Positions 6,630 through 30,300 of a stretch of 64,000 nucleotides of DNA are shown piece by piece. Below the pieces are notes generated by a model, which was not told the origin of the DNA, did not search any database, and worked only from the letters and a program-made list of their open reading frames with translations. Origin of the DNA: Takakia lepidozioides (taxonomy: Eukaryota > Plantae > Bryophyta); assembly GCA_030704615.1 (NCBI GenBank), contig CM060733.1, positions 15,314,001 to 15,378,000 on the forward strand. Direction: 5' to 3'. Position 1 is the first letter of the stretch; each line of letters begins with the position of its first letter. Made by a program: the position numbers and the translations under genes.

Positions 6630-7526
6630 TGTAATATAATCATTAACAAATCTCAAGGCGGCCGAGGAACTAAGTGGACAATTCAGCTGTGGTGTCCCTG
6701 GAGAGAGGAGGGCTGAACCTTGCATGCGGAGAGCAATATGTGGGTGTTCACAGTTCATGATTTTGAATGAACTCATAGCGATCAATTTGTATCTAAACTT
6801 AAAGGCTGATTACCTGCTCCACAGCTCAACTCGATTCTCAATTCAGATCAATTGTTGCAACTTGCTTTTTTTTACGTTCCTCTTGTCTAATTCTCCTCCC
6901 TGTCTTTCTTCCCCGCCTATTCGTCGACTGGAAATTCAGATCTCACTCCCCTACCAATGGTTCCATCATGACCAGACTTGAATCTAAACTAAGTCCTTGG
7001 CAATTAGGCGAGATCACACATCATAGGCCACTGCAATCATCACTCTCTGCGGCCCTTATTCTAACATGGCCAAATATCAACAATGTAATGCATGTACAGA
7101 TCCTTCAAGTCCCAATGATTCCTGACTCAACTGGAACTATCGCCCAATCCTATAATTGCACATGGTACTGGGATACACCCAGTCCTCCCAACCGCCACAC
7201 CATGCATCAGCTTCTGTATCATCTCTCTTCCCTACTCGTAGACACTGTTCACCATGGCCGTCCTGTCTGCCACACTCTATACAGCCAACGTCTACAAGTT
7301 CTCTTATCTAGGGAAAAACCAAAAGAAGAGAATCCCTAATCTACTCCCTGTACACTTTTCTACCATCTTCATATGTAGCTTTTGGTCTTGATCAATGGGA
7401 GCTTGCCACCTCCTGCTGTTCCACGTGGCATCCCCATCACCTCCCCTAGACAGCTGTCGACGATTGTTGAACCGTTCAACACCCTGCCACGCCTGTCGCC
7501 AGGTTCAATCTCACAGGGACGTTATA
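6630..7526 (-). repeat. Probable 3' LTR of the Gypsy element
   Basis: On the minus strand a polypurine tract AAAGAGGGGAGG follows the integrase stop, then TATAACGTCCC (decayed TGTAAC start). Segment ends ...TATTACA at 6630. No matching 5' LTR in the window. Confidence 0.55.
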
Positions 7527-7539
7527 TCACCTCCCCTCT

Positions 7540-10500
7540 TTATAAGGGAGTATTGTTCTCAGTACTGAACCGGGGAAAGTTCTTACCAAGATCATCTTCT
7601 CTCTCCCATGTAGATTCTTCTACAGGGTAATTCTTCAACTTGATCAAGAATTCGTTCCAAGAACGAGATCTCAAGGTTTTCACCTCTACCTTAAGAATCT
7701 CTTTTGGTTCTGCCACAACTTCTCGTTCAATTGTGACCTTTGGCAATTCTGGGAGAACATGGTTGGTATCCGAAACATATTTCCTAAGGCTCACATGAAA
7801 TACGTCATGTATCTTCCACCTAACGGGCAGTTCCAGCTGGTAGGCTACCTTGCCAATCTTCTTGATAATTTTGAAAGGTCCACAGTACCTTGGGGAAAGC
7901 TTGTAGCATTTTCCTAGGCTCAACTGGCTCTTATTAGGGATCACTTTAAAAAATACTTCATTTTCGATCTCGAATTCCCTAAAAGACCTTTTTTGATCAG
8001 CATAGGCCTTTGCCCTTTCATAAGCTCTCCTCGTGCTATCCATCATTGAGTCCATCTCTTGCTGCATCCTTGCTATCATCTGATTGACACTTTTAACCTT
8101 AGTATTTGAAACATGCCAAGATGCTGGTGTCAAACAATCTTGCCCATAGATAGCTTCGAATGGGCTTACCCCAATAGTTGTATGCATGTTCTTATTATAG
8201 GCAAACTCACAAAAATGCAAATATTGCTCCCAAGAGCTTTGTCTTTGCCCCACATACATTCGTCCGGGCATGTCTTCTAAGGTTCTATTTGTCCTCTCTG
8301 TCTGAGCATCAGATTCTGGATAGTAAGCACTGCTAAAACACAATCTGGTAATCAAAGCTTTGAACAAAGCAGTCCAAAATCCACTTGTAAACTTCGAATC
8401 CCTGTCAGACACAATTTCTCTTGGCAATCCATGCAGTCTGTATATCTCTTTTAAAAAGAGATTAGTTGTGTCTATAGCAGTAACACTCATCTTTGTGGGT
8501 ATGAAATGCGTCTGCTTTGATAAGCGATCAACCACCACAAAGATGACATCATGTCTATTTCTTATCTGAGGCAATGAAACAATGAAATCCATGCTTTGCC
8601 CTAGGCACATTCAGAGGTTGCAAAAGTCCAAGAGTCTTGATCTGTTCTATCTTGGTTACCTGACAAGAGTAACACCTTTCAACATAATCTCGTATGTTCT
8701 TCTTCATCCTAGGCCAAAAAAATTGTTTCCTGACTGCGAGATATGTTTTCTGAAAGCCAGGATGGCCTGCAATGGGTATGTTATGACAGTCGTACATGAT
8801 CTTTAGTCTAAAGTCTGCGACCTGAGGGATGCATGGACGCCCACTATGCAACCCATCCTTCAACAAATAAGCAAGATACTTGTCAATTTCCTCAGGAGTC
8901 TTAACCCCCCGAGACAGGCTTTCAAAAGGGCCAATAAAATATGCATCTCTAGCATGCTAACCTCTTATCTCGTCTATCACAGTACTTCTTAACATTGAAA
9001 TAACTGTTGTCCACCTTCTTCAGGACAATGCATCTGCCACCACGTTCTCTTTCACTTTCACATAATGCAATTCAAAGAATAACTGTTGGAGGAATTCTAC
9101 CCAACCTCAGTATCTGTCTCAATCTTAAATTCCCTTCCCAACAGATAATGCCGCCAAACCTTTAAGGCATGTATGATGGCTAACAATTCTTTTCATGCAC
9201 TGGGTAATTCAGCTCTGTTGGGCTTCGTTTCTAGACTCATCAGTAATTACCTGTCCGTGTTGCATTAACACAGCCCTATGGTCGGGTCACTTGCATCTGT
9301 GCAAAGTACTAGACCACCTGTCTTGTAATCCATTAATTTCAAGACATGAGCATGTGTCAACATATCTTTAAGCTTTTGAAAGCTTTCATTACAATCCTCG
9401 GTCCAGGTAATCGCTTCTAAGTCTTTCAGCAGACAGTAAGAGGGGTTGCAATCTTGGAGAATGCTTTTATAAATCTTCTATAAAAGCTCTGCAAGTCCTA
9501 GATGCTCTCACATCAATTCTATCTTTCGGGATTGGCCATTCTGCCACTGTCTTTACCTCTTGGGTCCATTAAGATGTCATCATTTGACATATGTGACCCA
9601 GTATTCCATTTGGGAAACAAAAAACTCACACTTGCTCTTCTTAGCATAGAGTTTATTTTCTCTTAAGATCTTTAGAACACTTCTCAAGTGTTCCACGTGT
9701 TCTTCTTCAGACTTCGCATAGATTAAAATGTCATCCATGAAGATTAACACAAAAAATTTCCTCAGATACTTTCTGAATAAGGTATTCATTAAGCCAATGA
9801 AAGTGGGTGGTTTGTGCACTTGTGAGTCCAAAAGACATCACTGTATATTCATAGTGGCTAAATCTAGTTCTGAAGGCCGTCTTAAACGTGTCCGAGTCTT
9901 TGACACGGATCTGATGGTATCCACCTTCGTAGTCTATCTTTAAAAATACTTGCGCACCATGCAAGTAATCAAATAAGTCATCTATCTTGGGAAGTGGAAA
10001 CTTGTTATTTACAGTTAGCTTATTCAGCCATGTGTAGTCCGCACCTTAAAGTCCCGTCTTTCTTTTTCTTGAACAACACTGGTGCTCCCCAAGGAGACTT
10101 GTTAGACTTAATATAACCTTTCTCTAGCAAATCAGCCAGATGTCTCTCCAATTCTTCATTCTCCACCAAAGAATGTCTATAATGAATTCTAAAGACAGGA
10201 ACTGCTTCAGGAAGCAATTCAATGGCATGATCTATATCCATTTCAAGAGGTAGTCCAGGCAGATCACTGTGAAACACATCTGAAAATTCAGACAGGACCT
10301 TATTTGCTCTGTTGAGCTTGTTCAACTCCACTTCAATGCCTTCATCATCATTCTCATGAATGCTTACGAAGAACAGCTGATCAGCTGTCTTCCATGTGCA
10401 TCGCTTCATTTGAAGGGCTAACAACAAGGGAACATTGGGTAGGGCTCTTGTACCTGTAAGCTTATCACCAGGCAACACCCCCTCCACTGAGCAATCTCCG

Positions 10501-10740
10501 CATGCCACTTGAGCGTCCACAGATGCCAGCCACTGTATCCCCAAGATGACGTCATGTCTCTCACTATCCCAGACACAGTGGTGCCCCCCTGCATTGAAAC
10601 AGGGACATCCAAACTCCTAATGTTGCTAGATCTTGTATCTTCATTAGGCAACAGAATGGTGCTGGCGCCAACCTCCATTAACTACAGTTTGCACTTGTTT
10701 GCAAAATTTTGAAACGAAGTTATGGCTGCTTCCTGGGTCA
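7540..10740 (-). mobile_element. Ty3/Gypsy chromovirus pol pseudogene (protease C-part, RT, RNase H, integrase, chromodomain)
   Basis: DPGSSHNF protease; [17 protein letters not shown]...KTAFRTR and [10 protein letters not shown] motifs; GHPGFQKTY...VERCYSCQ zinc finger; SMDFIVSLP/IVSDRDSKF core; GPF motif; EFLIKLKNYPVEESTWE chromodomain. Many frameshifts. Confidence 0.95.
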
Positions 10741-10984
10741 ATCAAAACCCCGGTTATCAGCGTCATGTCTGTCCGTCAGCGTCAGGTCGCGTCAGACCTG
10801 ACGCTGACGGGACCTCCGTCACGTCAAGTTCGGGGAATATTCTAGTAAAAATAGTACTAGGTAAAATACAGCCACTTAGACAGCCACGTCGCCCACACGG
10901 TGGCGGTGGCAAATACATTTTGAAAATTAACAAAATGAACACGACTATCGATTCGCTTTGTTTTTTTAAATTAAAAAAGAAATA

Positions 10985-12080
10985 GCGACCGCCGTATTGG
11001 CGGTCGCTTCAATTTTTATTTTTTTTAAAGCAAAATTGATGGTCGCATTGGGCAGTCGTTTTTTTTTTCGAAATAGAAAAAGAAATAGCGACCCCCATAT
11101 TGGCGGTCTCTTCAAATGTTTTTTTTTTAAAAACAAGATTGGCAGTCGTACTGGCGGTCGCCTTATTTTTCGAATAAAAAAAACAAATAGCTACCGCTAT
11201 GCTGGCGGTTGCTTCAATTTATTTTTAAGAAAAAACAAGATTGGCGGACGTATTGGCGGTCGCTTAATTTTTAAAAAAAAACGAGCGACTGCCGTATTGG
11301 CGGTCGCACGGTGGCAAATACATTTTTGAAAATTAACAAAATGAACGCGACCGCCAATTATGCCGGTTGCTTTGTTTTTTGAAATTAATAAAGAAAAAGC
11401 GACCGCAGTATTGGCGGTCGGTTCAATTTTTTTTTAAAAAGCAAGATTGGCGGTCGCACTGGCTGTCGCTTTATTTTCCGAAATAGAAAAATAAATAGCG
11501 ACCGCCATATTGGCGGTCGCTTCAATTTTTTTTTTTAAAAAGCAAGATTGGCGGTCGCAGTGGCGGTCGCTTTATTTTTCGAATTAAAAAAAGAAATAGC
11601 GACCCCTATCTTGGCGGTCGCTTCAATTTATTTTTAAAAAAAAACAAGATTGGCGGTCGCATTGGCGGTCGCCTAATTTAAAAAAGAAAACAAGCGACTG
11701 CCGTATTGGCGGTCACACAATTTTGTAAATATGTACAGAACAAGCGACCGCCATAAAATATAAAGATTAAAAGCGACCGCCTTACTGGCGGTCGCGTTTT
11801 TTTTTAAATATTAAAAATAAAAGCGACCACCATATTGGCGGTCGCTTTATTTTAAATATATTAACAAATGAAGCGACCGCCATACCGGCAGTCGCATTAT
11901 ATTTTGAAATAAAAACCAATAGCGATCGCCATACGGGCGGTCGCTTAAATTTAAAAATATATAAAATAGAAGTGACCGCAATATTGCACAAAATGAAAGA
12001 AAATAAAAGCGACCGCAGTAGTGACGGTCGTTTGTTTTTCATTAAAAAAAAAAATAGCAACCGTAGTATTAGCGGTCGCT
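10985..12080. repeat. Left subterminal array of GCGACCGCC-N4/5-GGCGGTCGC palindromes with AT-rich spacers
   Basis: Dozens of GCGACCGC/GGCGGTCGC motifs separated by A/T tracts. Confidence 0.9.
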
Positions 12081-12508
12081 TAATTTCAAAATTACAACAA
12101 ATATAGTTGTACAGCCTTTTTCGGGTATGCGCTATTGGTTCGTCATTTATTCATTTCACTTTTATTTCACTTTCATCCCTCTTGGATCATATATAAGGGA
12201 GGAGGGTCACCAAGCTCCTCACTTCTTCTAGCGCAAACACTTGAGGTTGTTTTGGATGTTCTCTTCCATTGAACGAGAGTGTAGCCCAAGAGGAGGGTGC
12301 ATACCTTTTGCCATTGTGACTTCCACCAAAGCCACTTCAGCAAATTGTGTATAAGTTCAACACTACAACCCACATCGACCCACTTGGGTTGCTAACAGGT
12401 ATAGAAGTGTTGGGCTATCGCATTGCACTCTACATTCACAACACGTTCATTTATAGGTGACTATTTTTTGTTGCTTGCATCGCTAAGTCTCAGGGGAGTG
12501 GATATTGG

Positions 12509-15442
12509 GTGAAGATGAGGGAGGAATGGAACCCTTGGTATACGGCAATCCCGAACTCTGTTAGTGCCACTGGTAGTGTTGAGTGCAACCTATGTGGATT
12601 AAAGCTTTCTTATCGTAAGGATCGGTTGCTCGCTCACCTCGGTTATAAAGGTGTGAAGAGCGATGGGGTGGGTTTATGCCCCAAAGCATCTATGCGGGTA
12701 AAAAGCCACTTTGCCCAGTGTGGATGCAATATTTTAATGTCTTTGGATCTGGACATGACCTCTGAGCAGAACACTCCATCTTCCCGTCAGGATGCCCCGA
12801 TTAGTACCCAGGGCGACTCTTGTGAGGCTTCGGGTATCCTTGGACAAGTGGGTTGTGCCGGAGCAACACCTGCTTCAACACCTCTTTGTACCCCTATACT
12901 TCAACGGAGTAGAGGATTACGGCAGCAATTCATACAAGAAGGTCTTAACTTGTCTGCGAAAAGACAGTTGGATAAAAAATGGGCGCAGTTTTTCTTCGAT
13001 GCCAACATACCATTTAATGTGGCAAGGCTTCCGGCATTTGTTTTTGCCGTTAGAGCAACCTCGGAGTCCAGATCCACGTACGTGCCTCCGACATATCACA
13101 ATCTCCGTACAGGATTGCTAGAAGACGTCATGACCGAGCTTACCCAAAAGGTCAACGATAAAACGGACGAGTGCATCAGAAAATATGGAAGCACTATATG
13201 TGCCGATGGTTGGAGTTCTGTCACAAACAGACCGTTGTTCAATGTCATGCTCATATGTCCAGCTGGGGAACAATTCTTGGGATTGGTCGACACTAGCGGC
13301 GAGAAGAAAGATGAACGTTATTGATGTCATCTATTGACGGACTTCATTGAACAGGTCGGAAGTGATAGAATCGTGCAAATATGCACAGACAATGCCGCTA
13401 ACATGAGAAACACTGCAGACATGTTGTGGCACGTTATCCCCATATGTACTATCAAGGTTGTGCTGCTCATATCCTTGACCTCCTTTTGGAAGATTGGGGG
13501 AAAGAACAGTGGGTGAAACAACTTGTCAAGCGAGCGAAGACTGTTGTGTCGTTCATCCGCACACACCACATCCCTTTGGCAATATATAGGAGGCACAAAC
13601 CCAAATACAGCCTCCGCAATCTAAGCGAAACTCGTTTTGTCACTAACTTCTTGATGGTGGATCGGTTGGTGATCATGAAGAGCAGTCTGGAACACACCAT
13701 CATCGATCCTCAATGGGATGCGTACACACGGACATTGCGGGACTCCAGAAAAGCCAAGTCATTGGGCAAAAGTCGAAAAGTTCGAAATAGCATTCGCAGC
13801 GATGAATTCTGGAAGAAATGTGAAAACTTTGTTTATATGGTTGAACCGGTGTTAATCGTCTTGCGGGAGTTTGATGGAAAGCAACCAGTAATGGGCAAGG
13901 CATGGTTACTAATGCAAAATCTTGATAAGCACGTCCAATCCTTGAGGCATCCTCCCTTCTCCTTGGAATCTGAACTTGCGGACAGTGCTGAGGATGCATT
14001 TTACGACCGTTCGATGGTTCGAACGGACTTGCATTATGTGGGGGCTTTGCTCAATCCATTCTTGCTCGACAATACCATGCTCCGAGACGACGCTGATGCC
14101 AAGGCCGGCCTCATACGAGTGCTCATGCGACTGGCTCCGCCGAACCATGCAGAGAGAGTTATATCCGAGTACCAATGCTTCTCAGATTCGCCGCGACCCT
14201 TTTGAGGACATGCCGAATCCAAAAGAACTCAATATACTGCCAAATGAATGGTGGGATCTGATTGGAGCTGGAGCAAGAACATTGGCTCTCATTGCGAAGC
14301 GTATTCTTCGCAACAGGTTGAATCCCGTGAGGGCTGACAAATTGGTGTACGTGTATACAAATTGCCGACTGCTACGTGAGAGGGCAGCGGATGATGCTGC
14401 AGCATGGTATTAGAGGAATTTACATTCTGAAGACTCTGCTTCTGAGGCTAATTCGATGAGTGACGATACTGAGCATCAGAGATAATCATCTCAGAGGGAA
14501 TCATCTGCCTCCGATAATGAAGATGGATCCGATGATGCTCCCGAAAATGCGTATGACCCGTTTACATTCAGAGATGATGATGCTTATATCCAGCCGACCT
14601 TTGATGACCTTCTTGAAGAAGTGCGTATCGCAGATGAAGGTGAAGCTGCAATTGTGTCATCCCCAGAACATGGTCCTCAAAATGAAGTTGGGGTCCACCA
14701 TCGCCCCCCACTACACGCTGAAGCCACCGGTAGTGCCACAATGGAGCTTAGGGTGATGTACTGCCAAGACCGATCGACGTACGCAACCCTGTTCATACAA
14801 ACGATGGTGTCGAACCCATTGTACAGTCGACGGGACGGTATCATGCCTCACCGATACGACCAGCTCAACCACAATGCCAAAACCGATCCAGCTCCTCATC
14901 AACACAGCGGGCATTAAGGAGCAACAGGGTTGATCTGTTTTCCACACGCATGCATCATTCTGCTTCATTGGACCGGGCGGAAGTTGAAGCCTCGGATGAT
15001 GACAACCTGTCACTACAATTACACCTTAACCGACGTGTTGCGCAGCAGACCCGTGGTTCCTCACATGTCGGACCATCTAATGCCGATCCATCTCGGGCAG
15101 TTCCCCCTCCGGTACCTCCTTCGAGACCACCTTCGATTGCGTCCCAAGTCCATAAACAACAGAGAACAGTCCAACCTTTTGTAGGCGATCGACCTACAAA
15201 CATCAGATACCGTGGATGATATTCAAGACCGGAGCGGGAGTCGACCTCAGAGAGAACTAAATGTGGTTCAAGGTCGCTTGCAGATTCAAAGGCCTGGACA
15301 TATGAGGTCGGATAGGGAGGACGATTCCAGCACTGATCATGGTAACGGTGGTGAAGTCGAGGGTGACCCGGATTTTCAACCCATCGGAGCATTAGGATTA
15401 AGATCTTCTTCGTCCCGTCGTCGAAGCAGTAGAAGGAATTGA
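12509..15442 (+). pseudogene. hAT transposase (BED-type Zn finger, DUF659, hAT dimerisation region, acidic tail), disrupted
   Basis: CNLC...HLG...C zinc finger; GSTICADGWS...RPLFNVML; VQICTDNAAN; CAAHILDLLLED; TRFVTNFLM; WWDLIG; RNRL...DKLVYVYTN. Frameshifts near 13320, 13425 and 14200. The catalytic-Glu segment between AKRIL and RNRL is deleted. The 3' end is approximate. Confidence 0.92.
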
Positions 15443-15716
15443 AGCAAAACAGCTGTAAGCATGCATCAGCACTTTTTAGTGGACATGTTTATATTTCTGT
15501 ACTGATATAATACCAATATGATCATTGTCACTATGAGTATTTGTATTGCTGTTGAGTATGTGTTGAAAAATAAAAGATGTTGCACATGTGTATATCAGCC
15601 AAAATGTCGGCCAAAGGCCCCGTCACTTGTTCATGTTTGTGTTCGGTGATTTACTTGTGGAATGGAGAACAATTGTGCCATGCTTCCAACTGTGCATTCA
15701 TTTTTATTTAAATGGA

Positions 15717-17030
15717 GCGACCGCCAAGGTGGCGGTCGATTCTACGAGATCTGCCCTCCGCGTGGAGCGAGGAATGAGGAGGGGGGGGGGGGGGGGGGGC
15801 ATATAAGCTCCCAGTTATTATTTTGGAAATGAAGCGACCGCAGATTGGCGGTTGTTTTTTTGTTTTTTTGGATCAAAATGGAGTGACCGCCATTAGGGGC
15901 GGTCGCCGTTATTGTTGTTTTTTGTAATTGCAACGACCGCCATTAGTGGCGGTCGCTTTTATTGAAATTTGGTTGGAAATGGAGCGACCGCCATTTATGG
16001 TGGTCGCTTGAATTTTCATTGTTTTGAAAATGAAAATGGAACGACTGCCAAGGTGGCGGTCGCTTCTACGAAGTGTGCCCTACGCATGGAAAGAGGAGTG
16101 AGGCGGGGGAAAAGGGGCCAAATAACCTCCGAGACATTCTCCCCTCACTTCGCTTGAAGTTCTTTTTTGTTTTTATAAATGCAGCGACCGCCATTACTGA
16201 CGGTCGTTTTTTTTCTTTTTTTTGGCGATTTGGAGTGACTGCCATTTGTGGCGGTCGTTTTTTTTTGTTTTTAAATGGAGCGACCGCCATGGTGGCGGTC
16301 GCTGTAATGGTTATTTCTTAAGATGCAGCGACCGCCATTACTGGCGGTCGCTTTTATTTGAAAATGAAGCGACCGTCTATGTTGGCGGTCGTTTATTTAT
16401 TTTAAATGTTTTGAAAATGAAGCGACCGCCCATGCTGACGGTCGCTTATTTATTTTAAATTGTGTTTAAATGAAGCGACCGCCTATGTTGGCGGTCGTTT
16501 TTTTTTTATAAAGTTTTTGAAAATGAAGCGACCGCCTATATTGGCGGTCGCTTATTTATTTTAAATGTTTTGAAAATGAACCGACTGCCATTGCTGGCGG
16601 TCACTTATTTATTTATTTTTTAAATTAAATGAAGCGACCGCCTATGTTGGCGGTCGGTTTTTTTGTTTTAAAGTTTTTGAAAATGAAGCGACCGTCTATG
16701 TTGGCGGTCGCTTATTTATTTTAAATGTTTTGAAAATGAAGCGACCGCCCATGCTGGCGGTCGCTTATTTATTTTAAATTGTTTTTAAATGAAGCGACCG
16801 CCTATGTTGACGGTCGTTTTTTTTTTTAAAGTTTTTGAAAATGAAGCGACCGCCTATGTTGGCGGTCGCTTATTTATTTTAAATTTCTTTAAATGATCGA
16901 CCGCCTATGTTGGCGGTTTTTTTTTTTTTTTTTCCGGAAAATGGAGCGACCGCTAGTTCTGGCGGTCGCTTATTTTTTTATTTTCCGGAAAATCGAACGA
17001 CCACCAAGTTGGCAGTCGCTTCTAGAAGAT
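15717..17030. repeat. Internal GCGACCGCC palindrome array with three copies of a promoter-like module
   Basis: Same motif as the terminal arrays. Module ...CTTCTA..GCCCT.C.CGTGG...GAGG.GGGG recurs at ~15717, ~16041 and ~16997; TATAAG follows copies 1 and 3. Confidence 0.88.
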
Positions 17031-17391
17031 TCGCCCTGCACGTGGCCCGAGAAATGAGGAGGGGGAGGGATATAAGCCAAGGGAGGCTTACTCTCCTCTC
17101 ACTTCCTCTCCACACAACTTCTGTGTGCGTGACATTTCATTATTTCACGACACGTAGTCACGTGGAGAAGAAGGCCATTGGTTGGGTGGGGGGTATTTTT
17201 TGCCGCGATTTCTGTAAGGTCGTTGCAGAATGCTCCCATAGGCCCTCATGTGGTTTCCATGATCATTTTATTCTACAAAATTAGCTTTTAGGAACTATTT
17301 TCACACATACTCAAACCTATTTAACGGGGGAAGGGTTTAGAGTTACGTCTTTTTAGAAAACCTCGTTTAGTGTTGCTCCGATTGTTGTAGA

Positions 17392-19315
17392 ATGGCAGAG
17401 GGCCAGGACGATGACCGTCATGGAAGAGATGACCCCAATGAACATGGACCGTCCCCTAAGAAAATCAAATGGTCAAGGCAAGACTTGAGTTGGGAAGTAT
17501 TTGGTGATCCTAGCATACTAGCAGAAGAGGGCTGGGAGGATGTTCCGGAAGAATTCCGATGGCCGATGGCGAGATGCAAAAAATTCGTGAAATGGTACTA
17601 CATCAATCGATTGTGGTCTTTGGATAGATATGACGTGCAAACTCGAAACAATTACGCAGAGTCCAGGTCTTGCACGAACTTGCATTTCCAGCATATGACG
17701 AATGAGGTGCATTGCACATTGTGGGGTCAACCTCTTTTAAAAGGTCAAAATCCCGTACACCTTGGCAGCCATGTTGTACGTGGAGGTCATACTCTTGCGT
17801 CCAGTGAATTGGCAAACTGCTAGTAGGAAGAACGTAAGGTTGCTATACGATTTGGAGTACATCCCGGATACGTTCAGAATACAACCGGCTGCAACGTTAG
17901 AGGAACAACTAGCGGAAAGAGACCAGCGAATCAGGACCCTGCAGGACCGACTAGACTGACAAACACTACGCATAGCCGAGTTGGAAGCTAGATGCAAGAC
18001 CTGCCTCCAAACAATGAAGGCACTGTTATCCACAATGAGGTACGAACAAAAGTCGTGGACATGGACGCGGAGTTTGCGATGCCCAATCGCAGTATTGACC
18101 TCATCATTCAAGAAGTTACGGACGTCCTTGATCCTGTGGCCGCTGAAACCATGGTTGAGGAACAGCGAATTGTGGATGAGAAAAGGAGGAAAAGAAAAGA
18201 ACCAGTACTAGAAACCGGGGAATGCTCGAGGGTCGCCATTCAATCGGAGATGAACCCGTTATTAGATGTCGACCGCGTTACAAAGGAACGGGACATTGCC
18301 ATGGCAACTGCATGGCGCTTGTCCAAAACGCTGGAGATTCAGGCACGGGTTCCATTGAATCGGGAGAATTGGGTACAATGGGTAACCCATTTGGCCTCCA
18401 GAGAAGCACGGGTAGAGCGGGCACTGTCAGGCTTACAACGTGTCGCACGCATGTCGAACCGTAGCGTGGATAGCATTTATGCCAACATGCAAAGGTATAA
18501 CGATCTTTGCATCGCATCAAGCGTGTTCGTCGGGTATACCAATTGGGTTAAATGTGGATTATATGTTCAATCGATGTGATCACAGAATTTCAGGGTCGAA
18601 CAGAAGCATAAACTAGGAATTGGAGATAGAGGAAGAGTGGGACACCACAACAAGGATGACTAGCCACATCAAACCGGCCCAGAGGGAGGAGATACCACGA
18701 GGCGTTTTGCCATCATGGATATCAGATGGCATAGTTTGTTCGATGTGTAGGAATCCATACGGCCCAGAGGGATGTCATGTGCTTGGATCATGTGGACATA
18801 TGTTCCATCTCACATGTCTTATCCCGCAAGCCTTGCGGACGAGCGCTAGCCCAGAATGTCGTACACCAATCCATCACCATTTCTATGAGCTGGAGGGCTT
18901 GGAGGATCGGATGCCCATACGTTTTGAATACAATCGACATAATATCCCATTAGATGGGCTACCATACACATTTCTGAATTGTGTGCATTGGGGCAAGAAC
19001 TTGGTATGGGATGCAGACAGAGAGATGCATGGCATACATGCCGGAAACCCGGCATACATCAAAGATCCCCAGTATTTCTGGATCACATCTGATTGGGAGA
19101 TAACCATACGTGCGGGAGGCATTCGAGATTGGTGGGAGAGAGAGCAGTTTTGCCGCAATCTCGGAGGGCATTGGAGTCAAAGAAGGTCCAGGTTTATCCG
19201 GCTCCCACAGGTTCCATGGGTGCCGGAGGAGAACGAATTGTATGACCAAGAACCGATTGGGAAACATTTGTTGCTGTCCGAACTGGAAGATGCTATAATA
19301 GTCAACGCCGAATGA
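17392..19315 (+). pseudogene. Cargo gene: coiled-coil plus RING-H2 protein, frameshifted
   Basis: ORFs 17392-17823, 17762-17959, 17992-18579 and 18620-19315 chain by frameshifts. Coiled coil LEEQLAERDQRIRTLQDRLD. RING-H2 CSMC...CGHMFHLTC...SPEC (7th ligand Cys>Ser). G-box at 17039 and TATAAG at 17071 upstream. Confidence 0.75.
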
Positions 19316-20479
19316 ATGATGCGTACGAGGCGGCTTATCGTCGAAACGACACAATGATTAGGGACAGGGCCCGCGAGAGGCAGTTGGAAAGTTTCAAAAG
19401 TACCATCAAGACAGTTGTAGAGAAATAGAGGCGATTATGGACAGACCGTTATCATCGTGTTTCGGGGGCTGTATTGCCGGATGTGGACCATCACTGTGTT
19501 TTCCAACAATATTCAAGGTACAACAAAAATACATATTATATATGTACTACGCTGCCAGTCATTAAAAGCCTAGTCGTCACTGTCCGAGGATGTGGAATTT
19601 GATGTTGTGGCCTGATTTGCACTGCCAATTGCCAGAGCTTGCGACCGTGATCTCGTGGTCAATGAGGGGCCCAATGACATGCGATCAATTTCTGGCCTGC
19701 ATCCGCCTACTTCGCGGCGAAAGTTGACTTTCTTCTTCACTCTCACGACGTGACGGAGGTGGATCGAGAACAAGTGCTCGGGCTACATGCAAATCGGAGA
19801 AGCGTTTTTTTTCATATTTACACTCGTGTGATGGGGAAGAAGTAGTTCACCCTGTAAACAAATTTACAATGGTGTCATATTTGGTCATGACGTGTATATG
19901 GGTTTCAAGTGGCGAACATTTCCGCCATGTTGATGTGATACCATTTCACAAATATATCATATCGCATTTGTGAAAATGTATCACATGAACCGTTCCATGT
20001 GGCCTACGGGAGTCTTCGATGGGTACGAGATCAATGTGGCCTACGAGAACTGCTTCCACCAACAAACATGTGATCATTTCAGAAGTGCTAGAACTTTGAA
20101 GCGACGATAGGCAAGGTTCTTCATCCAAATGTTCAACATGTTGAGGTCTTCTGTAATGTCTATTACTTCGTAATGAGGTGCTTCTCCAACTCTTATTTTT
20201 CCAATGCTAATATCTTCGATCTGGAACATATCCACACATGCGTATATAACTTTTTTTTTTAAATGACCATCAAAACTGGAAGCTGGGGATGAGGCTCATA
20301 AAAGTTGAGATGGTCATTTGTTTTTTTAAGGATTTCTGCACACGTATGTGGATCTGTTCCAGGTGGAGCATATTAACATATTGGATAAAGTGGACATGGA
20401 GAAGCACCGCATTACGAGGCAGGAGACACTACAAAAAAAACTTCAAATGGCATACCATGTAACAGGTTCCAGTATAACC

Positions 20480-21870
20480 GAAGACGAAACCCCATTCATT
20501 CAATGGGCGATTGAATATTTGCCCATCCAAATGATTTTCGTTTGCTTTCAATCTTTGTCACTATATTCAACATACCATGTATCAGGTCCAGGACTAATAT
20601 CAGATCAATCGAAATTCATTCGATGGCTCAACGGATGGTTGGCCATCGAAATGATTTTGGTTCGCTTTGAGACTTGGCCACTATATTCAATGTGCCATGT
20701 AAGAGGCCCCAGAGTAATATGAGATCAATCGAAATTTGTTCAATGGGCCAACGGATGGTTGCCCATCCAAATGATTTTCGTTCGCTTTGAAACTTGGCGA
20801 GTGTGTTCAATGTACCCTCTGATACGTCCCAGTGTAATACGAGATCAATCAAAAATTGTTCAATTGTCCAATGAGGCGTTCACTTGTCATCTGGTTTTTG
20901 TTCAATGCGAAAAAAAAATCCTGCAATGCGTGCACGGCTATTGCACCCATTGAACGGATGTGGTTGAAGCCCCTCTTTTGCCCGCATGTGCTTGAACATG
21001 TGTGCGACACATGTGCGGAGACACAACAGACGAATAAATCATTTGCCTCCCCATCGATGCACTTCCCCCTCAAGCCATTCCACAATTTAATTGAATTTTA
21101 ATTTATTTTTAAGCCAATAAATAGGTTTGCACTGCCTTTCAGTGGGGGTTTCTGGCACGTATCGATTTTATTTTTGGCTCAATTTTGTTCTGCGGCTTCC
21201 AGCATCCCACGGCTACTCCCCCGCCAAAATTTGGACCAATAAAAAATGCCCCAAAAAAAAAATGTTCTCTTCGCTCACTATTGCAAAACTCTCTATGAAG
21301 AGTGCATGAAGTAGAACACAAATCAAGTTTGGAGTGCAAAACAGGGAAGAAACTGTGGTTTTGGGTCCAAATGAATTTTGATCGCTTCCAAATTTGACAC
21401 GCACGTTGCATATGGCTACATTACACGCCCCATTTAAAAACGGAATGAAAAAAAAATTGTGAACACGCGAAACACAGTCCAACAAGTCCCAAAGCAATAG
21501 CAGCTCCAACAAAATACATTCAACGGGTGAACGGATGGTTACCCATCCAAATCATTTTTGTTAGCTTCCAAACTTTGCCAGCACGTTCCAGACACCCTCT
21601 CACAGGTCCCGGACTAATATCAGATCAATCGAAATTCATTCGATGGCTCAACGGATGGTTGGCCATCGAAATGATTTTGGTTCGCTTTGAGACTTGGCCA
21701 CTATGTTCAATGTGCCATGTAAGAGGCCCCAGAGTAATATGAGTTCAATCGAAATTTGTTCAATGGGCCAACGGATGGTTGCCCATCCAAATCATTTTCG
21801 TTCGCTTTGAAACTTGGCGAGTGTGTTCAATGTACCCTCTGATACGTCCCAGTGTAATATGAGATCAATT
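20480..21870. repeat. 120-bp tandem units, duplicated as a block 1020 bp apart
   Basis: GATCAATCGAAATT...TTCGCTTTGA.ACTTGGC units at 20603 and 20723, repeated almost identically at 21623 and 21743. Confidence 0.85.
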
Positions 21871-23836
21871 GAAATTATTTTGTGCTTTGAGAACTTTGTG
21901 GGTATGTTCATAGAAATATCATAGATTTTGTGAAATGATTATGAAATACACAGGGACCAGGCAAAATTTGTTTGGACCCGGACCGTTCGTAACTCGTTAT
22001 AATTTATTTATTAACATCAATTTTCCTTGTTCTCCAGCTTTCGGAGTTTTCGAAGGTCATTCTCTGGACTATTTAACTGACAGTGTCAATCCACTCATAG
22101 CTATCTACAGGATACATATCAAAATTGAGAATTTTCACAGCACTGATTGTACTTGGCTAGCGTCTGTGTTGTAATCACTGAGTCTACGCAAGCAATCAGG
22201 TGTGACCATGACTAGGGATCAGCTTAGCTCAAAAGTTCGTGGGAAGAAGCTGCAGCCCTCACTTACATCAAAGTACATTCACGGCCAAGAATATTTTGGG
22301 TTTAGGAGCACCCCATCGCCGACAAATGCACCATCCTCTTAGCGAAAAATCTGGTTTCCGTGCTTTCAATACCCACGAGCTTTGCACCCTCGGCCCTTCA
22401 TAAATATAGGCACCAAATAAATATAGGCATAGTACACTCTTCATTAAAAAGAGAAAAAAAGAAAATGCGGCACGCCAACTGAAGAAAATCGCCAAGGCCG
22501 ATTGCAGCAGAATTCCCAAATCTCATTTTCCCATTTTCTCGTCATTCTCCAGCACCACCTGTGACCATCAACACCACCAGCTCACGTCTCCTCATCGAAG
22601 TCCACCCCATGGTACCTGCGATGACATCAACAATCAACTGCCAAAAAACCGGATCACAACGGCTGGGATTCCTCCTCGTTGGTCTGAATTTGGACAAAGA
22701 ATTGCGAATCTAGGCTTGAAAGTAGAGATTTTTCTTTGATGAACCGGATGTTGCAGGCTGCAGTCTGCAGTCTGCAGCTCAGTCACTACCAAACCCTAAA
22801 GACTTCCTTCAGTTCTCTTCCTCTTTTTTTGAGAGCGGTACAGGTCGTTGTGACTGTTTCTTTATGTAGCATTGGAAAAATTGTTATATGCTCTGTACTT
22901 CCGAATTCCGTATCAGCCACCAGGGACATGAAACCAAGAACTTCGCACAAAATCTCCAATTCATTCAATTTATGGTGGGCCATGGTTACAGCCTGCAAGC
23001 TGGCCGGGGTGGCTGATACGTCCGTTTAAACATGACAGTCTCAGAGGCCACAGAATTCAGCTAGAGGAACAACAATAGCATGAAACACCTTACCGTAAAT
23101 ATGCTTGTTGACATTGGTTGTGACAGCTCCAATCAATAGAGAACTCGCACCATCAGTTGCGCTCCAACAGCAGTACCGGTCCCCCGAGTAAATAAAATTC
23201 CGTTGTAAATAATAAATTGCATACGCTCGAACCTCACAAATGTCATTTCAACAAAACCGGCCGTGTATTGTGGCACTGTTTGTAACTGCAAATGTTTCAA
23301 TGTTTCTGACAGGGTATTGAGAAAATGATATATTGGATCCATATGAATTAGACAACAAACATTCCATATCTCATTCAACTGTGCGATACTACCATGAGTG
23401 ACATGGATAAAAAAGTAATAGGTGTACATGTGACCTCCGCACGTTTAAGTAGAGACCTAGTATCAAACGTTCGGAGGTCGCATGTGTACCTATTACTTTC
23501 CGATCTATGCCTCTCATGGTAGTGTCGCACAGTTGAATGAAAGGAGACGTTTGTTGTCTAATTCCTACGAAACTAATACATCGTTTTCTCATAACCCTAT
23601 CCGAAACCTTGGAACATTACAAATATAAACAGTGAGCCAGTACACAAACAATTTATGTTGCGATGACATGTGTTAGGGTCGAGCATATGCAATGTAGTAT
23701 TTACAATGAGACTTTATTTATTACATGCACGATCAAAATTGAGTTATGTCTTCATAAAAGAACCATTGTACCGCCAGAAATCTCATATCTACGAGACTAT
23801 GGTATACTCCGTCCTATATACGTCTTTCGGCTCAGG

Positions 23837-25238
23837 CTAATTGAATGGCTTGCCCATGAACCAAAGTACTACATAGGCTAATGTGACTCTCTCATTCTTG
23901 TTGTTGTCGTACAACCTTTGTAGCATTGAATGCCAACAACCTCCCGTAAATTGGTCCTGGAACATATTTTGATCATAATGAGTGCCGCCATTTATTCGTA
24001 CCGCTATCTTTCCAATGGCAAAGGCCTCTGACGTCATGTCCTTTGGGGGGGAGGGGGGGGGGGGGTGACATTCGCATTAAAACCGATGCAATATCTTTTT
24101 TCACCCACCATCTTTTCGCGAGTTCCCGGTCCAGCTTGTCTTGGTTTTCAAACTGGTACGGCGAGGCTTTGCGTATGCCCAATGGGGTGGCTAAGCCCCA
24201 ATCACACACCCCAATCTTGATCTCCTCGGTGCCATCTGGAAAATGCAACAAGATGTTGTCGGGGGACAAGTCGTTGTGCAGGACACCGTTCTTGTGGACA
24301 ACATCCATGATGCACACCAGTACCCATACAAGTTTACTGCGCACTTTCCCGAAGCAAGCGATCGCATTCCTGGAACTTTGTTTCCGTTCCCCTTTGTTCC
24401 AAAATCACCATGTTATCCGAATCGTTGCCCCATTTTCTGTCAAGGTTCATCATGTCACGTATTGTCCCCCCATTCCACCAGCGAGTGTAACCATCTACCT
24501 CACGTGCATTCACAGCAAAATACAAGATAACACCCGGATGCTGGAACTTTACTGCCAAACACTCGTTGTTATGTTGTCTCAACGCATTTTCTGGATTTTT
24601 GGACTTGGGTTTTTTTCCCGCTAGCTCCCAACGCTCCGGTATTCTAGAATTGCCAACAATCCTACAGTGACGGACCTTAGCATACCCTTCTTCTTTGTAA
24701 GGGCCAATCTCTACCACTTTCGCAGTAGAGTTCAGGTAATAAAGACCAGTTGTGCCTCCCCCGCCCGATGACCCTGCCTTCCAAGGGACAACCCTAGTCC
24801 GGCGATGTGAGTTCTGACTTGCCGATCAAGCCCAATACTCAACAAGCCGCATTAACTCAGCTTCGGCGGAGGGCACTCGACCCTCGGCCTCAAATTCCAC
24901 GTGGCGTCTTTCGCCCTGCTTTGGATCCACCGATTGAACTTCGGTTTGTCCCTGTCTGCCATCCACTTGGCCCCTGCCAAAGCGTTTGTCAATTTCCTCT
25001 CCATATTTTGCTGAAAAATCTGAAACCCCTCCCATCCATGCCTAACATAAGCACTCTCCAGCCTCATCATGTCCCTACCCTTGAAATAATCTGCTACCAC
25101 TTCTTTCACCCTATCCAAGGCATCCGGTCCCAGGTAGTTTGGCTTGTTGACCTGGCTATCCCGTTCGTGGGCACGTTTTCTCTTCCTCCGCCCCCCAGAC
25201 GATCCCGCCCCAGAACTTGAATTCACAACCCCCGACAT
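23837..25238 (-). pseudogene. Cargo gene: atypical protein kinase (HND / DWG motifs), frameshifted
   Basis: Gly-loop region YKEEGYAKV, ELAGKKPK, alphaC NNECLAV, HPGVI, catalytic loop VLHNDLSPDNILL, IGVCDWGLAT, SEAFAIG. N-terminal RRKRKR. TATATAAA at 25571-25564. Confidence 0.85.
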
Positions 25239-25680
25239 TGTATAAACCTTTGCCCAGTACAGGGTCCAAAACCTCAGAAAAATGGCAATGAACGTGTGTG
25301 GATGATGTCTTCGTAGTTTTCTGCAAAAAAACAGGCCGCCGGAGATCCGGAAACGGCAAAATGGTGATACGATGATTGTACCGTGAACAAGTGTGTGGGA
25401 CTGACCAATAGAAAACCAACAAAACCTCCCCCCCCCCCCCGAAATAATCACCTTTGCACCTCCCGTTGGCAGTGCCAAGCAACGAAGTCCGAAAGGACTA
25501 CATGATGCCAAGGAACCGCACCACAAGAGGGGCAAAAGTGATCAGAAAATGAGGGGGGAATGGTTTATATAGGCGCCCACTAGCCCGCCCCTCCCAAAAT
25601 GACATTATGCTTGAAAAGGCGCGACAGGCCAGTGGCGTTGAAACGTGGCGCGACTGGCCAGTTGCACCTCGCCACGCGCG

Positions 25681-26150
25681 ACTGACCAATATGGGCGGTC
25701 GCTTCATTTATAAATAAATAAATTACGGACGACCGCCAATATGGGCGGTCGCTTCATTTAAAAATAAATAAATTACGGGCGACCGCCAATATTGGAGGTC
25801 GCTTCGTTTATAAATAAATAAATTACGGGCGACCGCCAATATTGGAGGTCGCTTCATTTATAAATAAATAAATTACGGGCGACCGCCTATATGGGCGGTC
25901 GCTTCATTTAAAAATAAATAAATTACGGACGACCGCCAATATGGGCAGTCGCTTCATTTAAAAATAAATAAATTACCGGCGACCGCCAATATGCGCGGTC
26001 GCTTCATTTAAAAATAAATAAATTACCGGCGACCGCCAATACTGGCGGTCGCTTAATTTAACAAAATATTAAATTACAAGCGACCGCCAATATGGGCGGT
26101 CGTTTTTATTAAAAATAATAAATTATATGCGACCGCCAATATAGGCGGAC
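25681..26150. repeat. Right subterminal array: ~9 tandem 50-bp units
   Basis: GACCGCCAATATGGGCGGTCGCTTCATTTAAAAATAAATAAATTACGGGC recurs at 25731, 25781, 25831, 25881, 25931, 25981 and 26031. Confidence 0.93.
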
Positions 26151-26335
26151 TCATTTTTTTAGAAGAATTAATAAATATTAATAATTGGTCACGTCTATTT
26201 TACACCGTGGCTACCATGTCAGTACAAAGGGTAGAAGTAAATCGTAAAAGTCAAATATAAAAAAATATTACATGGATAAACGTCCGGATTCGACGTGACA
26301 TGACGCACGTCAGGAATGATAACTAGGATCAAAAC

Positions 26336-27337
26336 AGTCGTGGTCTCTCTTTCCATCTGACCATTCAATCGTATGACTGTGGAATTATAGTGTATTTCCT
26401 CACCCATCACAGCCGCTGAGATCCTCAGCTGTTTGCCTTTGCTCGTCCCAGGTGCATCCACATCCATCTTATCCTCAACCTCTTGCACAATCACAGCTGC
26501 AGCTGCACGTTGTATGCGTTTGGAACATTCAAACGTCCGATGGCCTATTTCATGACAGATGAAACACTAACCCAACCGTCGGTGTTCTTCTTGTTCCTTC
26601 TCTTATAGAGGTTTGGTTGCTAGAGCCCCAAATTTCTGATTACTTCGAGGCTCAGTCATTGTTGTCTTCTTATTGAACCTTTTCCAGTTCTTTCTTTTCT
26701 AACCTCCACCAAAAAGGAATGACTTCGGTTTGAAATCCCTGTCAATAGATGCATTTGTGCCCAGATGTGCCTTGTGCTGGCTCTCGAAGTTGATAGCTAG
26801 TCTATATGCATCAGCCTATGTCTTTGGCTCATATGCCTGAACCAAAAATCTGATTGCTTTGTCTAGCCCAGTCAGGAATAAATCTACCTGTCAGACTCCT
26901 TCAAGGAATAGAAGTATGAAGCTTGTTCGTCAAACTTCACCTTGTAGTCTGCCACACTCATTGTTCTCTGGCTAAGTTCCATCAAACCCATCTTCATCTT
27001 GTGCGCATAATCCTCTGGCAAGTACTGTTCTTTGAAGACCCGCTTGAACTTAGCTCATGTGGTAGTTGGATCTACTCTCCCTTCCAGACCCAGCTTCTCT
27101 TTCATTCTAATCCACCATTCTTTAGATTTGCCTCTCATTTGTAATGAGGTTGTGCGGATCTTATCTGCATCTGTATAGACCTCACTGAAGAACTCTTCCA
27201 GAGTCTCCAGAAAAGACAACACCTCAGTGCAAGGCACATTTAGGCAACCATGGAATTCAGGAAGATGCGTCATCTTCCTAATTTCTTGCGGCTGCCTCTT
27301 TCCAAGGTGGGCCCCCTATGAAGTACCCCAAGTTGCT
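26336..27337 (-). mobile_element. Gypsy gag and protease N-part (continuation of 7540-10740)
   Basis: LPEFHG...FLETLEEFF...DKIRTTSLQMRGKSKEWW gag; zinc knuckle CFICHEIGHRTFEC near 26520-26565; ends ETTTVL at the hAT junction. Confidence 0.88.
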
Positions 27338-30300
27338 CTAAAAATTAAAATCAACCAAAGTGGCTAGGGTGGCTAGGACGTCTAGCAAGCTTGCATGACC
27401 TGGGTGGCTATTTGCATGCCTTGTGAATGGGGTTATTACATGTGGGGCCCTCGTGGAGGGCTTGGCTAAGGAGGTTCTAGAATGGAGAGAGAGATATGAG
27501 GGATGACTCTTGTAGAATATGTGTGGTGAGGTCATGAACGAGGCTATAGCCAAAGAGGGAGCTCACCAAGAGGGAGGGTAGACTTCGTGCAAGAGTGGCA
27601 AGGTGGAAGCGGCAAAAGGTTGGCGCTAGGGTGGGCAGGGGATGCACCAATAGCGAGGTGTTGCAGCTACAAGTGGTGGTAGGGGCGACGACATGAATGA
27701 TCCACGGTGACCATATGTTTCAGGAGGTGCTTTATACACACACTCTCTCTCTCAATGGCCATCAATTTTATGGCTTGGTTGAGATTTTATTTTAAGAATG
27801 TGTCGTCATTATATTGGAGCAGAAATCTTCAAACCAAGCTCAAGATCGATATTTTACCAGCATATCATAAAGCACTCTGGCTTTGGGCTTGTAGCACAAT
27901 TTCAAATCAATCTCAAGATTGATTTACCCACATACCATAAAGCACTCCGGCTTTGGGCTTGTAGCTTCATAAATAAACGTTGAATTCTGGAATTATGAAT
28001 AGAACACAAACAAACATGGTTGATAAAAAGACCATCATCACAATATTCATCCTCTTCGTTGTAAAGTAACTACAAAGCATTGGCCTTTACTGGCAGTAGA
28101 CATATTCAGAGCCTTTTGTTGAGGGTGTGCGTTTTGGAGACTTGTTTTGTAAATGTGACCCTGACATGATGTCGCTCGTTATGATATACATGTTTTTGGA
28201 TTTTATGACGGATTACATGTCAACCTATATTTTTATTATCTAGCACTATCTGTATTCAACATTGAATTTTCTGCTCGGAATTACATCTCCGATGCACTTT
28301 ACTGTATTCCATTATTATGTCATATGGCTCTACACCGAGTTTATACAAGGAGTGAATATGAAGGTTGTGCATTCAATATAATTCTACTCTTATGAGTACA
28401 TTATCTCTAGTGTTGAATTACAACACTCTCTTTTCCATTCGCACCAAGGGGTTACATTAAGGGTTCACAACTAACACTTGTCACCTTCATCCTTTTTTTT
28501 AGCCCTGTGGGTGAAAAGTGTCACCCAACACCTATTCTACTTAACCCAATACTTGATCACACTAGGTGATAAATGTACAGTAGCGTTGAGTTATTCCTCC
28601 TCCATACCCGTTCGGACCAAAAATTAGCAATGTATCCAAAAATCCTAATTCACTATGTTCGCGACCTTCTCCGCCCTATTGTCTCCCTCCTCTCCTTTGT
28701 CGTCTTGTTTTGGTTGTTTCCGCAATAAGAAGCTTTTAAAATTTAAGGTTTCACAGCTTGGTTTGGGCATGCCAAGACTTGAGGTATCTTTGTGAGGTTT
28801 TAGGTAGTGACATTGAGCTCAAGGCTGTGGGGTTAACTTTTAAGGAGACTAGGAGTTGGCTTAATGGTCACACTAGACATATAATGTCGGAGACACTAGA
28901 GACACAACACTGAATACCCATCGACGTATAATCGAGGACATTCTTGGGAACACATTTCCATGGAACATACACATGGGAACGAAAATAATGAAATTATACC
29001 CTGGCAATGGAGAGGTCTGAATAACCCCCAACGCAAATCTAGGATATTTTGAGATTAAAGAATAGCACGGATAACGTTAGTTATCTCGGCTTTTAATTCC
29101 TCATATATCCTAATTGCAAACGTACATTTTTATAATGTTATATGTCATTATGCACCTTCAATTAGTTGGTGGAAATGAGCCTACCAACAAAGCCAATAAA
29201 TTTGGTCTATCAAACTCAAATCTCTTTAATGGGAAGTGCAAAAACAACTCTAGTATTTCTCATCTCCACTATCAATGCGCGCATGTTGTTTTTTGAAGTT
29301 GAAGCTGTCTACATATTATCCAACTATACATCGAAGAACAACATCAAGATTCTAATATTTGTCGATTCAAAAGAAATTGTATAATGCTAAGATATCAAAT
29401 TCTTGACAAACACTAGGTTTTTTCCTAAAATTGCAATTATCCTCTTAATGCACTAGGCCCAATTTGGGCCTCGGCTGATTTTCAATTGTGAATAGTTTTG
29501 TAGATGTTACTCAATTTAGGAAAATTTGACAACTGTATAGTGGATTTCTTAGCCGTGTGTAGAATCAAGTTTATGTTCAGGACAATGAAGTGCATATATT
29601 AAGTCCGACTCAGACGACTCAGACTCCGATCATTACGAGCGTGTTGAAAATGTAAAATTTGACCTCAGTGTTCATGATGTGATCGGTGATCCAAATATTT
29701 GGGACTATTGTGTTGATACTGAATTTAAAGCTATACATGAGGTGGGTGCATACGACTTGCCAATGAGACACACTCAATAGTTCGTTAGACGATTGTGATA
29801 GAAAAATGGGGACCTGTAATTCACACAGGCTTCTCAACACCCCACGATCAATATTAGCGCCATTCAATATTTTTCTTTGTGTACTAATTTACAGAAATTG
29901 TATCACCACCTCAATTGAAAACTGTCGCGTTGGTTTGGGTTATTGCACACTCGGATACCTACGTCATCACATAATATCCTCTTTGACCAGGATGACCCCG
30001 GAACCCAAATGACATCATCAGGTTACGATAATACTATATCTTTCGATAATTTGCCTCAATCACTTATCATCGTGGTTCATGATTATACCCCGTGTAATCC
30101 CTCTCACTGTCCTTCATCTTTCCTTTTGATTTTCATGTAACCCGAGTATCAACCTTCCTGTTTCTACTGATCGGAAAACCCGACACCATTGGTCACGCAA
30201 TTCGGCAACCCAATAGCCTCAAATCCCATCAAGTTCTTAATGCACTCCCCGTCAAAGACAGAGTAGATTCCGCTGAAACCAGCATAATTAAGGGCCACTT

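Follow-up and report, generated by a model that had tools for sequence, protein, structure and literature searches.

A 64,000-nt stretch of the moss Takakia lepidozioides genome (CM060733.1, positions 15,314,001 to 15,378,000, forward strand), here called the window, very probably contains one dead copy of an abundant multi-gene transposon of a land plant that belongs to the hAT superfamily. The copy occupies window positions 10749-26327 (15,579 bp), and members of its family are about 15-17 kb long. On this reading, one cut-and-paste event placed it within the protease region of a Gypsy element of the chromovirus type. Next to a transposase gene it carries genes for a protein kinase and a RING-H2 protein, and our analysis supports the conclusion that both are part of the transposon lineage and did not arrive by later nesting.

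The boundaries of the insertion can be read directly. The earlier note, made from the letters of the window alone, had described a 15,579-bp unit with a perfect 8-bp target duplication that splits a Gypsy protease at VL/IDPGSSHNF, and this description held. The duplication, of the length expected for hAT elements, is exact (ATCAAAAC on both sides), and in silico removal of the element together with one duplication copy restores the protease frame in an uninterrupted minus-strand reading. In the reconstructed empty site, a gag CCHC knuckle (CFICHEIGHRTFEC) is followed by the protease (..ERETTTVL/IDPGSSHNF.. ..ILGIQWL..) and a reverse transcriptase. Open reading frames (ORFs) further downstream match Integrase_H2C2, rve, SH3_Tf2-1 and Chromo in Pfam, and together these matches identify the host element as a decayed Gypsy of the chromovirus type.

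The terminal inverted repeats of the window copy are short and imperfect (9/11). A scan for 8-bp repeats combined with 11-bp inverted ends returned 28 pairs in the AT-rich window, mostly of low complexity, and this pattern alone is thus weak evidence for a boundary. We regard the boundaries as secure because the protease frame is restored and because the ends match those of an intact relative, whose end CAGGGTTACCA shares GGTTAyCA with the window ends. No second copy of the element was found in the window by blastn.

This intact relative came from a search with the C-terminal lobe of the kinase against 1.84 billion representative proteins, after which the contexts of family members were fetched. 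The search returned a family of proteins of about 500-550 amino acids (aa), of which 43 clusters had E < 1e-10. Some further long kinase matches, P0001 among them, were set aside as unrelated multi-kinase or PDS5 gene models. Family member P0007 lies on a 17,136-bp ENA metagenome contig (ERZ27253086, k141_152333; L007 below), in which all four element genes are intact: those for the kinase, the RING-H2 protein and the transposase, and a further one, gene 4, described below. The L007 element spans 445-16201 (15,757 bp) between the ends CAGGGTTACCA and CAGGGTTGTCA, the second given in reverse complement, and both fit the hAT consensus YARNG. The sequence at position 445 begins CAGGGTTACCAATCGGACGTCC, and the reverse complement ending at 16201 begins CAGGGTTGTCAGGACGTCC. 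The pattern of the window ends gave no match at the far end of L007, which was located by reading the sequence.

Three contigs, L003, L004 and L007, each from a different sample, share 98.7-99.8% identity; their sequences part precisely at L007 position 445, where each runs into a flank of its own, which means that the element occupies at least three insertion sites. These flanks lie at the kinase-side end, and the kinase gene of L007 lies 650 bp inside it. The kinase is identical in all three contigs. L004 and L007 differ by 6 coding mismatches in about 6.2 kb and by about 18 non-coding ones in about 5.6 kb, a difference that is suggestive only, since the changes are too few for a ratio of non-synonymous to synonymous substitution rates (dN/dS).

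The gene set recurs in divergent lineages. Five further loci link the family kinase or gene 4 to at least one other element gene (Table 1), at protein identities of 25-64%; the kinases of these lineages likewise are 25-64% identical to that of L007. Indeed, wherever the fetched context exceeded about 6 kb, other element genes were found beside the kinase or gene 4. The earlier note had proposed a multi-gene hAT lineage in which kinases of the HNDLSP..DWG type and this RING family are linked to DUF659 transposases. Such a lineage was found: all genes lie between the two ends of L007, contig_2261 has all four, and other loci hold subsets, with the linkage of kinase and RING gene to the transposase seen in L007 and contig_2261 and that of kinase and transposase in L008. 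A scan of contig_2261 for target duplications and inverted repeats gave no credible ends.

A second line of evidence comes from arrays of short motifs that precede the genes. The exact motif GGCGGTCGC occurs 53 times in the window, against 0.07 expected, and every copy lies inside the element in one of three blocks upstream of genes. Twenty copies precede the transposase gene (10985-11944, followed by a TATA box at about 12190), 22 precede the RING gene (15717-16969, with a TATA-like GATATAAG at about 17070, some 320 bp before the ATG) and 11 precede the kinase gene (25694-26137, with TATATAAA at about 25571-25564 on the minus strand, some 330 bp before the ATG). In L007 a motif of the GGCGGTCGC type stands upstream of every gene, with a TATA box before the kinase gene; contig_2261 carries GCAGTCGG (65 copies) ahead of each gene, and L010 has GGTCGCC ahead of both of its genes. 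Judged from these sequences, the array motif is a lineage-specific word of 8-9 bp with the core GGCrGTCG. The layout of array, TATA box, leader of about 320 bp and ATG predicts that each element gene is a transcription unit of its own.

The ends carry a different signature. GACG/CGTC occurs 8 and 4 times per 120 bp at the two ends of the window copy and 12 and 12 times in L007, against a background of about 0.6. This GACG zone of the outermost ~100 bp is distinct from the arrays, and the end-proximal arrays lie inward of it.

These data bear on a composite origin by nesting, in which a hAT element with one gene later received independent RING and kinase insertions and the block at 15.7-17.1 kb would mark where a second element ends. 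The block does resemble subterminal repeats, in an orientation opposite to that of the 3′ block; moreover, the segment at 22.2-22.8 kb looks specific to this copy, and the repeat at 20.6-22.0 kb is a distinct one of far higher abundance. However, L007 holds all genes between a single pair of ends, with three different flanks at the kinase-side end, and the same gene set is met again in divergent lineages. Arrays stand upstream of every gene in every lineage, which makes the 15.7-17.1 kb block a promoter array and not the end of a nested element. Finally, neither ends nor target duplications of their own were found around the RING or kinase segments, a finding that the earlier note had named, together with family members lacking the cargo, as fatal to its proposal. 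We therefore consider nesting extremely improbable.

Table 1. Features of the window and of related loci.
Sequence	Feature	Position	Strand	Evidence or remarks
Window	Gypsy downstream part (protease C-part, reverse transcriptase, integrase, chromodomain), decayed	7540-10748	-	Empty-site reconstruction and Pfam
Window	Left 8-bp target duplication ATCAAAAC	10741-10748	.	Read directly; identical to right copy
Window	5′ terminal inverted repeat CCCGGTTATCA	10749-10759	+	9/11 match to reverse-complemented 3′ end
Window	5′ subterminal region rich in GACG/CGTC	10749-10870	.	8 in first 120 bp; background ~0.6
Window	Motif array 1, ~50-bp units around palindrome GCGACCGCC-N5-6-GGCGGTCGC	10950-12100	.	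Upstream of transposase; tandem repeats
Window	hAT (DUF659) transposase pseudogene	12509-14809 (end approximate)	+	Pfam DUF659 on two ORF pieces; homology to L007, L011
Window	Motif array 2, GCGACCGCC-N5-6-GGCGGTCGC palindrome, ~53-bp units	15700-17070	.	Upstream of RING gene; tandem repeats
Window	RING-H2 accessory gene, broken	17392-19315	+	Weak RING Pfam matches; homology to L007 RING protein
Window	Two blocks of 120-bp tandem repeats, satellite-like, non-coding	20461-21900	.	Tandem-repeat and depth evidence
Window	Long near-perfect hairpin, arms ~255 nt	23189-23720	.	Inverted repeats 81-86%; -285 kcal/mol, z = -19
Window	Protein-kinase accessory gene, broken, HNDLSPDN..CDWG type	23801-25238	-	Pkinase match on C-lobe ORF
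Window	Motif array 3, 50-bp units	25636-26172	.	Upstream of kinase on minus strand; tandem repeat, 89% matches
Window	3′ terminal inverted repeat, reverse complement CCTAGTTATCA	26317-26327	-	Pairs with CCCGGTTATCA
Window	Right 8-bp target duplication ATCAAAAC	26328-26335	.	Exact match to left copy
Window	Gypsy upstream part (gag with CCHC knuckle, protease N-part), decayed	26336-27800	-	Empty-site reading up to junction
L007	Kinase	1101-2585	+	Intact
L007	Gene 4	4701-6256	-	Intact
L007	RING-H2 protein, 1039 aa	8281-11400	+	Intact
L007	Transposase, 966 aa, DUF659 and Dimer_Tnp_hAT	12608-15508	-	Intact
contig_2261 (L009 and L011)	Kinase, RING, 183-aa N-domain gene, 995-aa transposase
L011	Gene 4	6727-7278
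L011	Transposase	12818-15805		Intact; within the 926-995 aa range of the intact transposases
L008	Kinase and transposase
L008	Transposase	8118-10898		Intact; within the same range
L010	Kinase and N-domain protein
L010	Gene 4	4138-5631
L012 (end of 356-kb contig)	Gene 4 and kinase
L012	Gene 4	713-2402
JGI contig	Gene 4 and RING pieces

The family is abundant, and the interior of the window copy is uneven. In one DNA run of the window organism, 36,122 contigs matched positions 20401-26400 at ≥90% identity, which indicates that the element family is abundant in this genome. Summed contig depth, which is not a copy number, reached 20-48 thousand over the kinase region, about 120-210 at 22.2-22.8 kb and 1-2 million at 20.6-22.0 kb. 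The last segment looks like a separate and very abundant satellite-like repeat embedded in the element; it consists of two blocks, each with three copies of a 120-bp unit and separated by about 1 kb, at a depth about 40 times that of the kinase region. No convincing coding frame was found in the 120-bp repeats (region 19.9-22.3 kb). The interior at 22200-22800 has a summed depth about 100-fold lower than that of neighbouring family sequence and is probably specific to the window copy; neither ends nor a target duplication of its own were found for it. The statement that the whole 15,579 bp arrived in a single event thus stands for the ends, and it does not necessarily extend to every internal base, as these two segments indicate. 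Just past the 3′ end of the kinase gene lies a long hairpin (Table 1), multi-copy in depth like the kinase region; no similar sequence was found in the rest of the element or in the fetched loci.

All three genes that had been predicted inside the element, namely a hAT transposase and a RING-H2/coiled-coil gene on the plus strand and an atypical kinase on the minus strand, were located. The cargo genes had been said to look intronless and full-length. The first part of this claim was upheld, as all three are intron-less and collinear with intact relatives, and the second has to be given up for the window copy, in which each gene is broken by frameshifts or stops.

The window transposase is 39-48% identical to the intact transposases of L007 and L011 (39-45% to that of L007). 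It reads through frames 2, 1 and 2 in turn with at least three in-frame stops, and its lesions include a TGA in frame near 13322, two frameshifts (near 13420 and near 14200) and further stops. Pfam recognizes only DUF659; the damaged dimerization region (14138-14809), which appears internally shortened by eye, is recognizable by homology alone. The RING gene keeps the layout of its family, with an N-terminal family domain, a short coiled-coil region, RING-H2 and a conserved C-terminal domain. It is 36-47% identical to the L007 protein over residues 13-182 and 628-896 and passes from frame 1 to frame 2, with a frameshift near 17750 and a stop inside the alignment. Its seventh zinc ligand is changed from Cys to Ser (SPEC vs CPLC), so that the C3H2C3 set is incomplete. 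The kinase gene falls into at least four frame segments, collinear with family members of 494-552 aa and 43-46% identical to the L007 kinase; it keeps HND and DWG and has lost APE (WWVKKD). No homologue of gene 4 was found in the window beyond the N-domain of the RING gene itself.

The window copy is therefore a fossil. All three of its genes are pseudogenes, and it can itself contribute neither phosphorylation nor ubiquitination; consequently, its mobility would depend entirely on proteins made by intact copies.

An alignment of 14 kinase sequences (A1), only 23-32% identical in pairs, has invariant K212 (AxK), E231 (helix C), H327-N328-D329, N334 (catalytic loop) and D352-W353, and near-invariant APE and R467 (subdomain XI). 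The residues of an active eukaryotic protein kinase are thus present in the family alignment, and Pfam Pkinase matches are weak to moderate. Conservation of catalytic residues at such low identity argues for active kinases under long-term constraint. The nearest solved kinases are generic ones (CaMK, HRI and RIPK1), with a best E of 0.004 for a single sequence and 5e-5 for the family profile. From its sequence, the protein appears to be a very divergent, intron-less kinase of the Ser/Thr type and about 500 aa. The closest ESM-Atlas cluster of P0007 is labelled Streptophyta. Among its feature-based neighbours, several clusters of Nucleocytoviricota kinases follow after its own Streptophyta cluster, which we mention as a lead only.

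One could also suppose that the kinase and RING genes are copies of host genes, captured in the Pack-type manner and serving no purpose for the element. Fragments of host sequence are frequently picked up by DNA transposons of plants, and all three genes have decayed in the window copy. What the family carries, however, are not fragments but complete intron-less genes, each with a family-specific promoter array and a TATA box. Intact ORFs with conserved catalytic residues persist in lineages that are 23-32% identical, the kinase is far from all solved cellular kinases (by the E-values given above), and the kinase or gene 4 adjoins other element genes in all of the longer contexts. Capture of this kind is therefore very unlikely, and the view of the earlier note that the cargo differs from Pack-type host fragments is borne out by the absence of introns, the promoter arrays and the distance of the kinase from every solved kinase.

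The RING protein of the family, about 1000 aa long, comprises a family-specific N-domain of ~130 aa, a coiled coil, a RING-H2 domain and a conserved C-terminal domain. The C3H2C3 ligands are intact in L007 (CSMC..CGHNFHSTC..CPLC) and in L011, and Pfam zf-RING_2 matches at 1.4e-8; the protein is putatively similar to E3 ubiquitin ligases. Gene 4, present in some lineages, is a paralogue of its N-domain. The proteins of the gene 4 family (183-497 aa) share the ~130-aa N-terminal domain with the RING protein and have 55 relatives, many of them full-length; gene 4 gave no match to a Pfam family and no structural match. A model of the full gene 4 protein was poor (predicted local distance difference test, pLDDT, 58), and only its coiled coil matched anything.

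The intact transposases contain PF05699 (Dimer_Tnp_hAT), with E-values of 7e-10 in L007, 3e-9 in L008 and 2e-11 in L011, which places them among hAT transposases. They continue for about 300-390 aa past the hAT dimerization domain, where ordinary hAT transposases stop, and this extension is poorly conserved between lineages.

Two smaller observations concern neighbouring genes. In L012 a small called gene (3848-4195) with a precomputed PF20515 (2OG-FeII_Oxy_6) match lies between gene 4 and the kinase gene; no counterpart was seen in L007 or the window. Upstream of the Gypsy element, an ORF of 317 aa (window 4748-5701, plus strand) matches DUF688, a plant protein family, at E = 2e-8 and may be a host gene or part of one.

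Even as part of the lineage, the additional genes might be passengers, beneficial to the host or tolerated by it, that take no part in transposition or its control. A precedent is ToxhAT, a 14-kb fungal hAT that carries ToxA (named in bioRxiv 10.1101/2024.03.04.583430). Like our family, it is a large hAT-type element that moves extra genes; its cargo, however, is a host-adaptive virulence gene found in a few fungi, whereas here the accessory set is conserved across lineages and tied to the promoter motifs of the element. Hitch-hiking would agree with the varying gene order and orientation and with a gene 4 that comes and goes. Yet passengers would not be expected to remain with one transposase clade across 25-64% identity. 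Nor would they be expected to use the arrays of the element, whose motif changes together in all genes of a lineage (GGCGGTCGC vs GCAGTCGG). We regard this explanation as unlikely.

Several observations weigh against the interpretation of the window copy as a member of a multi-gene hAT family with functional accessory genes. Its ends begin CCCGG and CCTAG and not with the usual hAT YARNG, having C for A at position 2. The flanks of L007 lack a matching target duplication (AATAAAAG vs CTTCATAC), probably because this contig was assembled from several copies. Gene order and orientation vary among lineages, gene 4 is missing from the window copy, and the metagenome contigs themselves are not labelled with an organism. 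The stretch occurs in DNA runs of a single plant species and in a run labelled plant metagenome. No RNA run containing the stretch was found, and in two runs guessed to be RNA the contigs fall mainly on the satellite-like repeat at 20.6-22.0 kb, not on the genes. Foldseek and VIA-align searches of the PDB with an AlphaFold model of the N-domain alone (pLDDT 71, predicted template modelling score, pTM, 0.69) gave no match (best Z 2.4), a result that is uninformative, as it shows neither a new fold nor a function. Lastly, the roles of the kinase, the RING protein and the N-domain proteins are ones that we infer.

With these points in mind, a multi-gene hAT lineage suggests the following mode of action. 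The arrays, the terminal GACG zone or both may be bound by proteins encoded by the element, either the transposase or the N-domain proteins, and binding to the arrays would switch on all element genes together. The kinase and RING protein would then act in the nucleus on the transposase or on silencing or repair factors of the host, to the advantage of the element. Anti-silencing and host manipulation, which the earlier note had raised as possibilities, would be roles of this kind. Activation of cognate promoters by a transposase, or by a protein derived from one, has been shown in other superfamilies (bioRxiv 10.64898/2026.08.24.746577).

A more specific version is suggested by analogy with the VANDAL (Mutator-like) elements of Arabidopsis, whose VANC anti-silencing proteins bind to tandem motifs that are specific to each family and lie in non-coding sequence (PMC5735166, PMC10398659). 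VANDAL elements, too, are DNA transposons with accessory genes and with tandem short motifs around all genes that differ between related lineages. Lineage-specific arrays in non-coding regions, a trait of the VANC system, are present in the window, L007, contig_2261 and L010. VANDAL elements differ in belonging to another superfamily, no VANC-type Pfam match was obtained in any of the proteins scanned, and the accessory genes of our family encode a kinase and a RING-H2 protein. The resemblance would thus be one of layout, as no homology or activity links the two systems.

By this analogy, the arrays and the N-domain proteins (the RING protein and gene 4) might form a circuit of self-recognition. 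A protein of the element would bind the lineage-specific GGCrGTCG arrays before every gene and bring in the RING ligase and the kinase. Acting at element chromatin, these two enzymes would eliminate or disable silencing or repair factors of the host, and activation and mobilization would be confined to cognate copies. We consider this scheme possible and rather doubtful. If true, it would mean that a transposon has its own signalling and ubiquitination machinery for counter-defence.

The family can be set beside other known systems. It resembles classical hAT elements (Ac/Ds, Tam3, hobo and Hermes) in its 8-bp target duplication, short inverted ends (CAGGG... in L007), subterminal short repeats and a transposase with a C-terminal PF05699 dimerization domain, here accompanied by DUF659. 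Classical elements, in contrast, measure a few kb and have one gene, whereas members of this family measure 15-17 kb and have three or four separately promoted genes; the transposase here extends about 300 aa past the dimerization domain, and the window ends deviate as described above.

An accessory protein that accompanies the transposase throughout a family is also found in En/Spm (TnpA and TnpD), MuDR (mudrA and mudrB) and PIF/Harbinger (transposase and a Myb-like ORF). The accessory proteins of such two-gene DNA transposons are DNA-binding or regulatory, and to our knowledge none of them is a protein kinase or a RING E3-like protein. ULP1 SUMO-protease domains occur in KI-MULEs and CACTA elements and OTU domains in Helentrons. 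As in our family, these are enzymes of ubiquitin, SUMO or other protein modification that are encoded by an element and long retained, with an unclear role; the difference is that they are proteases in other superfamilies, and here a ligase-like RING protein and a kinase are found. In the literature searched, we found no hAT element described as carrying kinase or RING genes. Thus, large cargo-bearing hAT elements such as ToxhAT and two-gene DNA transposons were already known, and the combination of kinase and RING-H2 genes on a hAT is new within that literature.

hAT elements are the textbook example of one-gene, cut-and-paste transposons. In the family described here, genes for a kinase and a RING-H2 protein, joined in some lineages by a fourth gene, have been kept through deep divergence, and every gene is preceded by the same motif array, which co-varies with the lineage. 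Together these features point to post-translational control, encoded by the transposon, of the element or of its host, for which no description in this superfamily was found in the literature searched. Because L007 is an intact and apparently young element with both ends in public contigs, and because the family is abundant, the role of the kinase and of the E3-like protein can be tested directly.

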